A DNA stretch of 64,000 nucleotides from Stylophora pistillata (GCF_002571385.2 NW_019218070.1:245261-309260), one strand, 5' to 3'. Numbered from the stretch's first letter, positions 27,950-43,280 are shown. Notes: a model not told the origin generated them from the letters alone. Translations and numbers: made by a program.

Positions 27950-30522
27950 TCAAACTTGTACTGAGGTTAAGTCTTTGCTAGCCAGAATTATGGCCAGTCT
28001 TCTCATGTAACTTTTGAGCTGTGCTATTTCCTGACTGAGGTCCTGGTAACGAGTCTGGCCGCCAATCGCTCCCCCATTAACGAACTGAGGGGGGAATGGT
28101 GACGTACCATTGAGATAGAGCTCCTTTCAGGGAACAAGAACGGAAAAACATGGTGTTAACAGCCGTTTTCACGGCATGCATTGAAACGGCTGACAATTTA
28201 GAAATTAATAATGCCATTATTAAGGGGAAAAAACACAGCTTTACTTACCGTCAATTGCATGCCGATAACAAGCCCTCCCATGAGGTTGATACCATTGTTT
28301 ACACACAAATTAAATTTCTGATCTGAAATTGAGCTTGAGATTTGACCAAATAGAAGATAGTAGATTTCTAAGTGTTGCAAGTCAAATGTAAGTCTCTGAA
28401 GAACCTGTTTAGGAAGAAGAGAACATTAGGTTATGAATACCATTTAGGCATTTTCCACGTAACCTATTTACATTTTTAAAATATCATTGGGGGAACCGCA
28501 ATACTACTAGTGAAGCTATACTCTCTTGTTCATGTTGGAGGAATTGTAAGGAACCGAAAAGAGTATTGCCTCTCTTTATAGTCCACAGGGCAAGGAAAGA
28601 AAAAAAAAAAACAACAGAAAGGCTGTGAAAGTCACCTTTCACATTACATGAACAGCACACGTATTTGATTTTTCCGACAAGGCGTTTCACCTACTTAATA
28701 GTGGCATTTCACCCTACTTGACTTCATCTTGAAATGGCCAAAAGCCGAGCTCTTAAACGGGTACAGATCCCTATTGCAGTCATAATAGAAGGATGAAATA
28801 CTATTTTGAACCCTCAAACTTGGAAAATTGACCAGACCATTTGAAAAAGGTGAGATGGCAGGTAAAATGATTACGCACTTACCGTAATTCCTGAGGATGA
28901 GATAACGGAGCTTGCCATTGATGTGTTGAAAGTGATACTTCCCTGAGAATTGAGAGAGAAAAAAAGGGAAACGAAATAAGTTCACGAAGAACATGAAATT
29001 TGGAATTAAAGATTAGTGTTGCCTCAATCTGTGTTTTCTAAAAAAGAGAAAGAAAGAAAGAATGATAAAAAGACAAAAATCACCTCCCCCCTTGCTGCAA
29101 TCAAAATTGAAAACGAAACCAAACAGATTTGACCACCTCTTTGAAAGTGCAGTTTAATACTTGGCTGTTAATGCTTTGGACGTCTTTTCTGATAAGCCGC
29201 AACAAATTGAGACTCGTATTGATGAGATTTGTATCAAATCTCACACAGTCTTCATAACTTACAAATTTTTCCAAAGTTGTGTTGAGGTGTTTTGTAAGGT
29301 TCATGCACCAGTCGTCTAAGACTTGATGGGATGCGGGGATTCCAATTTGCACCACCCCTACCGCTGCAGGGCCAACCAGGGACCTTCTGGTTCGTGGAGT
29401 AGAAGATTTAACGCACGATGACATGACAATCATGGTTAAAACCAAGAGTATTGATAGTTTGTGGCTAAGTTGACCTATAATTAATGAATCAGTCAATCCA
29501 TTAGTTAATTCCTCGACCTGTCATTAAATCAGTCGATCAGCCATGGTAGTTGATCATCAATTAGTCATCCAGTCGTTCAATAGGTGAGTCATTTAATCAG
29601 TCAGTCAGACAGCCGTCAGTCTGTCAGTGAGTCAGTTAGTCAGCCGGTAGTCAGTCAGTTATTAAGTCCATCAGTCCATCAGTCCATCAGCCCATCAGTC
29701 AGTCAGTCAGTCATCAGTCAGTCAGTCAGTGAGTCAGTCAGTCAGTTAGTCAGTCAGTCAGTCAATTAATCGGTAAGTCAATCAGTCAGTCAGTCAATGA
29801 ATCAATCCGTTAGTGGGTCAGAAAATGAGTCGGTATTCAGTCAGCCAGTGAGTCAAACAGTTAGCGAGTGAGTCAGTCAGTTGGTCATTTAATCAGACAG
29901 CCAGCCAGCCAGTCAGCCAGTCAATTTATCAGTCAGTCGGTCAGTCAGTAAGTCAATCCCACAGTCAGTCATTCAATCGACTACTCAACTTGTTATTGAA
30001 TCAATCATGTATTCCATCAATCAACCAAAACCTCTTCCTTAGTACAATAAGTGTTAAACCAGTGTTAACAACTTTTGTCTCCAGTTAATTTTTACAAGAG
30101 GTGTATACGAATATAGAGCGGGTCTCTGAAATATAAAATTAAGACAAGTATGGGGAGGCTAAAACCGAATGTATTCTTGCACTACTGAGAATATGACGCG
30201 AGAGCGTAAATTTGCATTTGAATCAGTCTTTTTAGATAAATAATCTCCTTTAAGGAAAAGATCGCTATGAATAAGAAATTTTTTAAAGTAAAATTTTGTA
30301 CTTATATCTTAAGTCTCATGGTCAAACGTGAGGCCAAAGGCTCAACACGTGACTGTGGATGAATGGTTTGTCTCTTGTGATAATGTTAAGTTGGTAATTT
30401 AGTCAATTTTTACAGGATCACAGGTAAAATAAAGATCGAAGGTAAGTCACTGAAAAGACCTTAGGCTGCAGAATTTCTCCCTACATGAATAGTTAAATAG
30501 CTCTATGTTTCATACCTGGCAT
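27950..30522 (-). CDS. Putative long-chain four-helix cytokine-like secreted protein A (202 aa)
   Basis: Exons 30522-30516 (7 nt), 29474-29263, 28942-28883, 28404-28249, 28123-27950; intron phases 1,0,0,0. Protein: MPG|QLSHKLSILLVLTMIVMSSCVKSSTPRTRRSLVGPAAVGVVQIGIPASHQVLDDWCMNLTKHLNTTLEKF|GSITFNTSMASSVISSSGIT|VLQRLTFDLQHLEIYYLLFGQISSSISDQKFNLCVNNGINLMGGLVIGMQLT|ELYLNGTSPFPPQFVNGGAIGGQTRYQDLSQEIAQLKSYMRRLAIILASKDLTSVQV. The gene model is well supported; the family call is inference. Confidence 0.8.
29485..30025. repeat. Degenerate (TCAG)n microsatellite in intron 1 of gene A
   Basis: Long imperfect run of AGTC/TCAG tetramers. Confidence 0.9.
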
Positions 30523-30631
30523 CTTTATGGTCAGTCTGGATTTCTCTTTCGACAAATATTCAAATGTAGTTGTGAATTTCTAAGATATCTATCTGAGTCG
30601 TGAACTCAAGCTTTTCACGCGATGGGCCTTC

Positions 30632-40440: not shown

Positions 40441-40729
40441 TTTTTTCAACAGAAAGAAACTTACAACCTGACTGTGACTCTTAACCGGAAAGCACCAGTT
40501 TGCTCTGGAGGAAAATACCCAGTTTGAAATTTAGAAACATGACATGAAAAGGATTTCCTTTAATTGGCTGTTGTTCAATAAAAACTGCTGCACAACATGG
40601 GGCTTTCTCACTTTTGGGTAAAACTACGAATCAACGCCTGCACTGAAAGTTTATCCAAGTCCTTATATCATTGACTGGATATCGAAATTCATTGGACAAA
40701 AACTGCTTCAGAGATACTTCACCTTTGAT

Positions 40730-43280
40730 ATGTCTATAACAGGTAAGTTTCTCTGCATTTTATACTATCTCATTTTTTTAATTGTTAAACTATCCTTAAC
40801 TATTTCAACTTGTGAGTGAAGTTGATTTGTTCAGGAGTATCGTTCGTGAAGTAACCTTTTTATGTAAAAGTAGTTAAAGCCATTTGACTAAACTTCCTTT
40901 TATGGTTAGCGCTTGACTGAGACTGAGCGATTCATGGAAACTCCTTTAATTTTGTAATAAAGATTGTGTAAATTTAGTACAACTTACTGATACTGAAAAA
41001 CGATCCGGTATATCAATTTTCAATTTGAGGAGAATCAGTTCCTGAAACATACCTTATTACATGACATTTTACTCCCGCGTTTAATTTACGTAGATTTACC
41101 GGCCCAAATCAGTTTCGCTATATATTTCATCAATATTTTCTTATTCGCGGAAGAACTTATAAGGAAAATATTAATGTGTTTTATATTTTGGTTGATGTTG
41201 ACCGAATTTCTCAAATTTTATTTTAATTTTCAGGCGTTTCATTCCTTTTAATTATATTCCTTGGAGTTACTCGTCATTCCGTTGGTGCTCCACTTGGGAA
41301 AGAAGCACGGCTTGGTAGAATCAAAGAATACTTCAGGCGTATGGCATATCTCTGTGATCATGCACAACCAAAGCTGAAAGATTTAGCATACGAAACAAAA
41401 AGAGCTTTTGTAAGTGTAGAGGAAGTAAATTGTTTTGTCTCGGAATGGTTTTTTATACACAATGTATTCTTTAATGGGGTAAGATTTCCAAAGAATAAAC
41501 CACCAAGCAAAATTTATTATAACTACAGAATTCCCTGCATGGGTATTTCCAAGTACTGGCTTTCACTTTCTAATCAAAAGCCGGTTGGAAGAGTCTTAAT
41601 AGCAGGAATAATTTTTGATTTTCCAATTAGAAACTGATTTCAACCTTCTCTTTCCAAACACACCAAAAGACACGGCAATCAATCCATTAAAAAACAAACA
41701 AACAAACGACAACGAAATAAAATGCAAAGAAAATAGTGAGATGGTTTAATTCAATAATAATGATCAAAATCAAACTTAATGACTTAGGAATTCTATCAAG
41801 CCATTCTACGGTTAGGCAAATTATTCTGAATGCTAAATATTTGTTTCTTTTTAATTCAGGCTCAAGAATACTTTGGCGATCCTCGGGAAGCAAGAGGTGC
41901 TATCATCAGCGGATTTGAGCTTCTGGATAGCCGCACCAGGCTCCCGGTAAGTTGATCTTCTGAACTGTTTCAGGGTTGATATTGAAGGAGAAATTAGATG
42001 CTGGTCACTTTTCAGGATTAAAGATTTAACAAAGCGAGAGAAATCACTCTGATCTTGGCGTATGATTTTATTCATTGTGGCAGCTGATCGTGATGTCTAA
42101 TTTGAATTTCCATATTTTTACTATCAGTTGCACGTCTTTGCATCGAAAGCGTACAAACAAGTGGCTATACTCCACTCAGTCTTCCAAAATATCACTCAAC
42201 ATTGGCTTCAAAGTCAAGGAGAAAACAAAAAAATCAAGAATATTAAAGATAACCTGAGCAGCATTCAAGAACGGCTTAATCACCTGAAAAAACTCATGGA
42301 AAAAGTGGTAACTATAGACAACAGTTTTTGTTTTGTTTCATCGATTTACTCATCACCCNNNNNNNNNNNNNNNNNNNNNNNNNNNNNNNNNNNNNNNNNN
42401 NNNNNNNNNNNNNNNNNNNNNNNNNNNNNNNNNNNNNNNNNNNNNNNNNNNNNNNNNNNNNNNNNNNNNNNNNNNNNNNNNNNNNNNNNNNNNNNNNNNN
42501 NNNNNNNNNNNNNNNNNNNNNNNNNNNNNNNNNNNNNNNNNNNNNNNNNNNNNNNNNNNNNNNNNNNNNNNNNNNNNNNNNNNNNNNNNNNNNNNNNNNN
42601 NNNNNNNNNNNNNNNNNNNNNNNNNNNNNNNNNNNNNNNNNNNNNNNNNNNNNNNNNNNNNNNNNNNNNNNNNNNNNNNNNNNNNNNNNNNNNNNNNNNN
42701 NNNNNNNNNNNNNNNNNNNNNNNNNNNNNNNNNNNNNNNNNNNNNNNNNNNNNNNNNNNNNNNNNNNNNNNNNNNNNNNNNNNNNNNNNNNNNNNNNNNN
42801 NNNNNNNNNNNNNNNNNNNNNNNNNNNNNNNNNNNNNNNNNNNNNNNNNNNNNNNNNNNNNNNNNNNNNNNNNNNNNNNNNNNNNNNNNNNNNNNNNNNN
42901 NNNNNNNNNNNNNNNNNNNNNNNNNNNNNNNNNNNNNNNNNNNNNNNNNNNNNNNNNNNNNNNNNNNNNNNNNNNNNNNNNNNNNNNNNNNNNNNNNNNN
43001 NNNNNNNNNNNNNNNNNNNNNNNNNNNNNNNNNNNNNNNNNNNNNNNNNNNNNNNNNNNNNNNNNNNNNNNNNNNNNCCAGCATGTCAAACATTAAAAAA
43101 CAGAAAACAGCTTTGAATAACAGCGATGATATACAAAATATATATCGCGCTTATTCCAAGCCGCAAGCACTTCACAAATTTAAAGAAAAATATCTAACCT
43201 TGTTTCTGCAAGACTACAAATTTTATAGGCCTCTACTGTTAAAACTTAATCGCAAAAAAACTGAAAACTATTTAAGTTAG
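40730..43280 (+). CDS. Putative long-chain four-helix cytokine-like secreted protein C (exon 4-5 junction unresolved, spans a gap; possibly frameshifted)
   Basis: Exons 40730-40742 (13 nt), 41234-41409, 41860-41946, 42128-42307; phases 1,0,0,0. Protein: MSITG|VSFLLIIFLGVTRHSVGAPLGKEARLGRIKEYFRRMAYLCDHAQPKLKDLAYETKRAF|AQEYFGDPREARGAIISGFELLDSRTRLP|LHVFASKAYKQVAILHSVFQNITQHWLQSQGENKKIKNIKDNLSSIQERLNHLKKLMEKV. The probable last exon is ~43082-43280 (...ALHKFKEKYLTLFLQDYKFYRPLLLKLNRKKTENYLS). Confidence 0.72.

Follow-up and report, generated by a model that had tools for sequence, protein, structure and literature searches.

Among the long-chain helical cytokines, the genes of IL-6, G-CSF, GH and EPO have introns in phases 1-0-0-0. 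IL-6 genes have five exons, and the first intron of IL-11 lies 7 bp past the start codon (PMC3271213). In a BLAST-based survey of 2026, which also mentions Upd and Domeless, ligands of the IL-6 family came from vertebrates only (PMC13203501). With regard to cnidarians, STAT is known, the canonical cytokine receptor-JAK-STAT pathway is considered to have come together in bilaterians (PMC3670263), and CRLF3, a class I receptor that is present in these animals, is an orphan without a known ligand (PMC6797617). Here, we analyzed a window of 64,000 nt (the whole stretch of DNA under study; GCF_002571385.2 NW_019218070.1:245261-309260) from the coral Stylophora pistillata, in which an initial annotation had proposed that three adjacent genes, hereafter A (minus strand), B and C (both plus strand), form a tandem family of class I helical cytokines. 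Our results indicate that A, B and C are real genes in a transcribed cluster that is conserved across pocilloporid corals, and that they are candidates for the first such cytokine ligands outside bilaterians. Literature searches returned no report that deals with these loci, or with helical cytokine ligands of cnidarians.

The exon limits of A, B and C were re-derived by hand from the window sequence. The resulting models reproduced the exon limits, the intron phases, the Phe/GTAAGT end of exon 2 and the product sizes of ~200 aa that had been described before. Five coding exons with intron phases 1-0-0-0 and a first coding exon of 7–19 nt were found in A and B as well as in C (for C, by way of its P. 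verrucosa orthologue), and TTT/GTAAGT closes exon 2 in all three genes alike. The coding exons measure 7/212/60/156/174 nt in A, 19/164/93/165/174 nt in B and 13/176/87/180 nt in C ahead of an assembly gap. The products comprise 202 aa for A (including exon 1), 204 aa for B and 213 aa for the C orthologue, and by inspection all three have a hydrophobic N-terminus with small residues at positions -1/-3, which suggests a signal peptide. Within this layout, the predicted helix A corresponds to exon 2, the AB link to exon 3, helices B and C to exon 4, and the CD link together with helix D to exon 5.

In gene B (plus strand), exon 1 (33893..33911; 19 nt, phase 1) agrees with the protein P0004, and the P. 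verrucosa RNA contig L004 aligns at 33750-33913. Exon 2 (34344..34507; 164 nt), supported by the same two sequences, holds the signal peptide and the helix A region, and exon 3 (35448..35540; 93 nt), which is spliced here in P0002 and in L004, holds the AB loop with Cys80. Helices B and C are found in exon 4 (36064..36228; 165 nt), where AlphaFold2 (AF2) placed helices at residues 93-119 and 127-150. Exon 5 (37065..37238; 174 nt with the stop codon) carries the CD loop with Cys166 and helix D.

In gene A (minus strand), the 7-nt exon 1 (30516..30522; ATGCCAG, phase 1) followed by GTAT is kept at the syntenic place in both P. damicornis and P. verrucosa, and is the annotated start of P0005 (MPG...). 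Exon 2 (29263..29474; 212 nt) is covered by RNA contigs L005 and L006 and encodes the signal peptide, an RTRR site and helix A, with the AF2 helix 52-73 ending at the exon end. It is followed by exon 3 (28883..28942; 60 nt; AB loop), with junctions seen in L005 and L006, by exon 4 (28249..28404; 156 nt; helices B and C, AF2 helices 92-112 and 122-149), and by the coding part of exon 5 (27950..28123; 174 nt with the stop codon; CD loop and helix D). The 3' untranslated region (UTR) of A extends to about 26639, as positions 689-2174 of L005 align to 28124..26639. The furin-type R-T-R-R stands directly after the predicted signal peptide (29380-29400, minus strand; residues 28-34) and is kept in Pocillopora as R-T-R-R or R-A-R-R, which suggests cleavage of a propeptide.

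For gene C (plus strand), the models were compared with P. verrucosa L003. Exon 1 (40730..40742; 13 nt, phase 1) has an orthologous exon that is also 13 nt long (L003 16827-16839), exon 2 (41234..41409; 176 nt; signal peptide and helix A) shares 77% identity with L003 17299-17469, and exon 3 (41860..41946; 87 nt) encodes a loop. Exon 4 (42128..42307; 180 nt) holds two helices and has a weak donor, GTAACT, where the orthologous exon of 171 nt has the donor GTAAGA.

Database proteins, spliced RNA and synteny agreed with these models. The B model is identical at every residue to an S. pistillata entry in RefSeq, "uncharacterized protein LOC111335907" (P0004; 204 aa), and exons 2-5 of A equal P0006 (LOC111335909). 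Introns 2-4 of A were spliced exactly as modelled in two S. pistillata RNA contigs (L005 and L006). For B, the joint 36228/37065 of intron 4 was seen as GT..AG in two S. pistillata runs (X3 and X1), a predicted protein from a Pocillopora species (P0002; Logan open reading frame, ORF) was spliced at junctions 2/3, 3/4 and 4/5, and the P. verrucosa RNA contig L004 encoded a full 204-aa orthologue with all five exons and all four junctions. Hence the splice junctions that the initial annotation had wanted confirmed by RNA were found for introns 2-4 of A and, through the P. verrucosa contig, for the whole of B. P. damicornis and P. verrucosa share the gene order A (leftward), B (rightward) and C (rightward) as well as the splice sites. 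The interval 26000-42354 aligned collinearly to P. verrucosa over its whole length, A and B were likewise found side by side in P. damicornis, and the synteny was present in three Pocillopora assemblies. Between Stylophora and Pocillopora, dN/dS amounted to 0.35 for A, 0.36 for B and 0.42 for C (dS 0.26-0.35), indicating that the three proteins evolve rapidly under purifying selection. Because of the RefSeq identity, the spliced RNA, the synteny and the dN/dS values, a contaminant or bilaterian origin of the scaffold is excluded, and the coral origin assumed at the outset holds.

To what extent the three genes belong to one family differs between pairs. Searches in this study were run per exon or via database proteins identical to the models, and joined models were used only for translation, pairwise alignment and dN/dS. 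When B was aligned with the P. verrucosa orthologue of C, Smith-Waterman (SW) scores of 66-74 were obtained (z 7-9.6), which 0/300 shuffles reached; the alignment was collinear over residues 101-197 of both proteins, and an Ala-Pro start of the mature chain was common to the two. Judged from these alignments, B and C are true paralogues. The link of A to B and C rests on the exon-phase layout, the size and the conserved adjacency. The proposal of a tandem family of three was therefore borne out for B and C, and for A it found no significant sequence likeness.

Three types of searches pointed weakly from B to cytokines. Among 24,736 Pfam families, PF01110 (CNTF) was the sole family that recurred in all four B orthologues (E 0.02-0.16), and it aligned residues 91-191 of B to positions 67-169 of the 194-position profile with hardly a gap. 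Using ESM-Atlas features for residues 27-204 of B, all ten named neighbours were long-chain class I cytokines, including cardiotrophin-1/CNTF, LIF_OSM, IL6/GCSF, IL11, IL12A and somatotropin (scores 0.90-0.93; 199-212 of 256 features shared). The nearest of the named neighbours was the cardiotrophin-1 cluster, and the first neighbour overall was an unnamed arthropod cluster of 191 aa.

The third pointer came from fold prediction, for which the alignments of A and B held only 2-5 near-identical sequences each. The AF2 model of B was poor (predicted local distance difference test, pLDDT, 49.0), with helices at 93-119, 127-150 and 172-193 and a helix A that spanned only residues 56-62, and the model of A was poor as well (pLDDT 47.8; helices 52-73, 92-112, 122-149 and 168-201). 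In both models (pLDDT 48-49), the AB and CD links were long and the BC link was short. In a Foldseek search with the poor B model, the top PDB match was human CNTF (8d74_D; E 0.056, TM-scores 0.43/0.49), and the top ten also included IL-6, G-CSF, IL-11 and LIF. A VIA structural alignment placed B model residues 88-193 on CNTF 64-172 at 18% identity, in the same register as the Pfam match. Considering that both AF2 models are poor, these fold searches of A and B are to be taken as hints only. The structural check that had been suggested for the locus, i.e., AlphaFold followed by Foldseek, thus returned CNTF as the top match for B from a model of low confidence, and no cytokine for A.

Relatives of the cluster were searched for in the coral genome and in large databases. 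Six exon peptides queried against the 398-Mb S. pistillata assembly revealed no further paralogue of A, B or C elsewhere in the genome; a weak match on contig C13 was discarded, as it contained a stop codon and showed no likeness on reading. In a HMMER search with B exon 4 against 1.84 billion representatives, the only match besides two relatives from pocilloporids was a repeat protein that is unrelated, and a word-index search with C exon 2 gave no match. Since relatives were seen in Pocilloporidae only, the family is not dated before the cnidarian-bilaterian split, and the earlier claim of such an age was not borne out.

Taken together, we hold the chances to be close to even that B and C encode long-chain four-helix-bundle ligands of the IL-6/CNTF/IL-11 kind, with A probably being a third and far more diverged member; for B and C considered on their own, the question whether they are long-chain four-helix cytokine-like ligands is about evenly balanced. 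Several results weigh against this interpretation. No cytokine match of A, B or C passed any curated or significance threshold: the CNTF score for B (11.8-14.7 bits) lies below the curated cut-off of 22.7, and End3 scored about the same on B. PDB sequence searches (B profile; P0014) found no cytokine. According to the Atlas itself, shuffled proteins reach a score of 0.9 in 4-10% of cases; both AF2 models were poor with helix A of B barely formed, and in the VIA search Ferritin/Dps tied with cytokines, all values being in the background range of helical bundles. Furthermore, the three pointers for B (Pfam, Atlas and Foldseek) derive from one sequence and are not independent. Gene A gave no Pfam match (nor did the C exons), no ESM-Atlas feature match, and structure matches only of TM <0.5 with no cytokine among the top VIA rows. 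The homologues of the cluster were seen only in Pocilloporidae. In addition, the 7-nt exon 1 of A was not found in the assembled S. pistillata transcripts (L005 and L006), which without it would start inside the signal peptide. The initial assignment to class I cytokines is therefore backed in B by convergent signals of the IL-6/CNTF type, all of them below threshold, and found no counterpart in A.

The main rival explanation is that the genes constitute a lineage-restricted (pocilloporid or robust-coral) secreted helical family with another role, unrelated to cytokines, for example as a hormone or peptide precursor, a matrix protein, or an antimicrobial or symbiosis factor. The exon pattern would then be due to chance, and the likeness would be what any secreted amphipathic helical protein of ~200 aa shows. 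We give this explanation a considerable probability, although short of an even chance. The subthreshold scores, the comparable scores of End3 and other helical families, the Ferritin/Dps tie, the confinement to Pocilloporidae, the lack of a paralogue elsewhere in the genome and the silence of A would all be in line with it, and phases 1-0-0-0 are expected, by our estimate, in a few per cent of five-exon genes. A six-frame Pfam search of the genome, which found no Jak1_Phl, FERM_F2, STAT_bind, IL6Ra-bind or EpoR_lig-bind, also points this way and against a cytokine role; however, the search was insensitive, and because the same method sees STAT only at E 0.5, its negatives for receptor and JAK carry no weight. 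The genome check for a receptor, JAK and STAT that had been proposed thus yielded no receptor or JAK domain, and STAT only at that level. On the other hand, it counts against a lineage-restricted family of this kind that, of all Pfam families searched, the recurring one belongs to the very superfamily that had been proposed beforehand, in a register that is near-gapless over 100 residues. Also opposed to it are the ten neighbours with names in the language-model search, every one a long-chain class I cytokine, the first rank of CNTF in Foldseek, and an exon layout that sets the helices as in IL-6-type genes.

Two further alternatives concern the membership of A and the class of the ligands. 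It is possible, but in our view rather unlikely, that only B and C form a family and that A is an unrelated secreted helical gene lying head to head with B. This would agree with the absence of a cytokine signal in A and with its comparisons to B or C (SW z <2.1; hhalign P 0.08-0.16), which also count against a common family of three; it is opposed by the exon layout of A, which has the five exons and the phases 1-0-0-0 of the other two genes, closes exon 2 with Phe/GTAAGT and, like B, has 174 nt in exon 5, by the matching size of the proteins and the matching succession of their helices and loops, and by an A-B adjacency that is kept in three species. We regard it as very improbable that the proteins are class II-type helical cytokines (IL-10/interferon-lambda-like) instead of class I. 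Genes of IL-10 and IFN-lambda have five exons linked in phase 0, and in IFNL2/3 a phase-1 intron comes after an additional, tiny first coding exon (PMC2654155), which resembles the coral pattern. Yet no class II family appeared among the Atlas neighbours, the Pfam matches or the top fold matches, and four long helices are predicted rather than six or seven. It appears unlikely that B and C (and perhaps A) share common descent with the vertebrate IL-6/CNTF/IL-11/EPO-type cytokines.

If the cytokine interpretation of B and C is correct, we propose that the signal peptide would be removed, that A would also be cut at its furin-type RTRR, and that the glycosylated bundle would be secreted. The faces of helices A/C and D would then bring together cytokine receptors of the fibronectin-III type, with CRLF3 as the obvious candidate, and engagement of the receptor could feed into the STAT/SOCS components that are present in cnidarians. 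If B and C (and perhaps A) do share common descent with the vertebrate cytokines, class I helical ligands would predate the cnidarian-bilaterian split, and B and C would be candidate natural ligands for the orphan CRLF3, a receptor that extends from cnidarians to humans. With a coral ligand whose gene layout and sequence traces are of the IL-6/CNTF type, it could be tested at the bench how helical cytokines originated and which ligand belongs to CRLF3, and coral biology would gain a candidate for a secreted signal that acts in stress, immunity or symbiosis. Should the likeness be superficial, the genes still represent a family of secreted proteins, conserved and evolving fast, in one of the major families of reef-building corals.

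The 3' end of C is interrupted by an assembly gap (42359..43077), which by synteny covers intron 4, exon 5 and the proximal 3' UTR. When compared with P. verrucosa L003, the left flank was collinear up to 19449 and the right flank resumed at 20611, so that order and orientation across the gap fit. Exon 5 of the P. verrucosa orthologue (L003 19601-19795; 195 nt) falls within the unread stretch, and window positions 43078-43280 match DNA ~800 nt past the orthologue stop. Because of these positions in L003, exon 5 of the S. pistillata C gene lies in the gap and 43078-43280 is non-coding; the 3' end up to 43280 that the initial annotation had modelled for C is wrong. No reading frame crosses the gap at 42359-43077, and ORFs listed through its N run were rejected as artefacts. 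The first part of a short unplaced contig (C967, 1-1594; L012) is 100% identical to the final 31 codons of C exon 4, and the contig may hold the letters that are missing from the gap.

Further downstream, we found an inverted copy that takes in the last part of C exon 3 together with intron 3 and exon 4 at 47449..47882 (minus strand; 99.5% identity; exon 4 copy at 47675..47496). Specifically, 41921-42354 corresponds to 47882-47449 (99.5% identity) and 43078-44197 to 45948-44829 (99.2%). The inverted C copy lies behind a second gap (46396-47254) that mirrors the first. The inverted copy of the C 3' half was not found at this place in P. verrucosa, and it may have arisen either in scaffolding, if one haplotype was set in the wrong way round, or by a very recent duplication.

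Transcripts of A showed additional 5' exons on the minus strand. An alternative non-coding 5' exon (34360..34485) runs antisense to B exon 2 and connects with A exon 2 at 29474, and an in-frame stop stands just ahead of A exon 2 in this transcript. Upstream of it, this minus-strand transcript has another 5' exon (35439..35539; run X3; donor GTAACA, acceptor AG), which is antisense to B exon 3. The joints comprise a CT..AC joint at 34483>35437 and a minus-strand joint at 33414>34313; the loose end at 34359 corresponds to window positions 29447-29473, and the loose ends at 34359 and 35636 run on into A exon 2 at 29474. Given that exons of A lie antisense to B exons 2 and 3 (window 33414-35665), A and B overlap as natural antisense transcripts. 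P0008 was rejected as support for A exon 1, since its "MIAG" start is a TTG call within the unspliced intron 1. This intron holds a long (CAGT)n-like microsatellite (29500-29990), in which L005, L006 and an RNA contig of a related coral (L017) all start, unspliced into exon 2; these contigs reflect either a second start site or assemblies that break at the repeat. In the P. verrucosa orthologue of A (L003 3943-4503), the matches to exons 4 and 5 fall in shifted frames, and its RefSeq model (P0028) comprises 225 aa; this orthologue could be a frameshifted or decaying copy, or the result of assembly errors. Convergent to A is a large plus-strand gene (22857-26209) with a GGACT (gamma-glutamyl cyclotransferase-like) domain (E 7e-07), and because its 3' end overlaps the 1.3-kb 3' UTR of A, RNA assemblies fuse both. 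A QRICH1 domain match (E 1.1e-09) was also recorded in an open frame at 1909-2361 (minus strand).

When compared with known cytokine systems, B comes nearest to the CNTF/cardiotrophin-1/CLCF1 branch (PF01110). Its helices B-D and both links are spaced as in the profile, and this branch supplied the sole recurring Pfam match, the top Foldseek match, the same register in VIA and the nearest named Atlas cluster. The score of B falls short of the curated limit and, unlike CNTF and CT-1, B carries a signal peptide. The gene of CNTF is made up of two coding exons, against the five of the coral genes.

With IL-6, IL-11 and G-CSF, the coral genes share five coding exons, a very short first one and a phase-1 intron (PMC3271213 for the exon number of IL-6 and the place of the first IL-11 intron). 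They also share precursors of ~200 aa with a signal peptide, and these cytokines are among the Atlas neighbours and top fold matches of B. They differ in that no significant sequence match to the coral proteins was found, and in the Cys pattern, as the AB and CD loops of B each contain a single Cys. The first coding exon of human IL-6 is 19 nt long and that of EPO 13 nt. Those of A, B and C measure 7, 19 and 13 nt, and 7 is the IL-11 value (PMC3271213); we note this as a curiosity, in which only the shared phase 1 carries weight.

Erythropoietin, or an Epo-like ligand of CRLF3, is comparable in being a secreted long-chain four-helix ligand. The coding exons of human EPO measure 13/146/87/180/156 nt and those of C 13/176/87/180 nt, where the equal sizes may be coincidence; the searches, which for C covered single exons, gave no sequence or fold evidence that ties C to EPO. 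Among invertebrates, the closest parallel is Drosophila Unpaired (Upd1-3), whose proteins are about twice as long as those of the coral and which, as secreted helical ligands of a gp130-like receptor, are unrecognisable as IL-6 relatives by BLAST.

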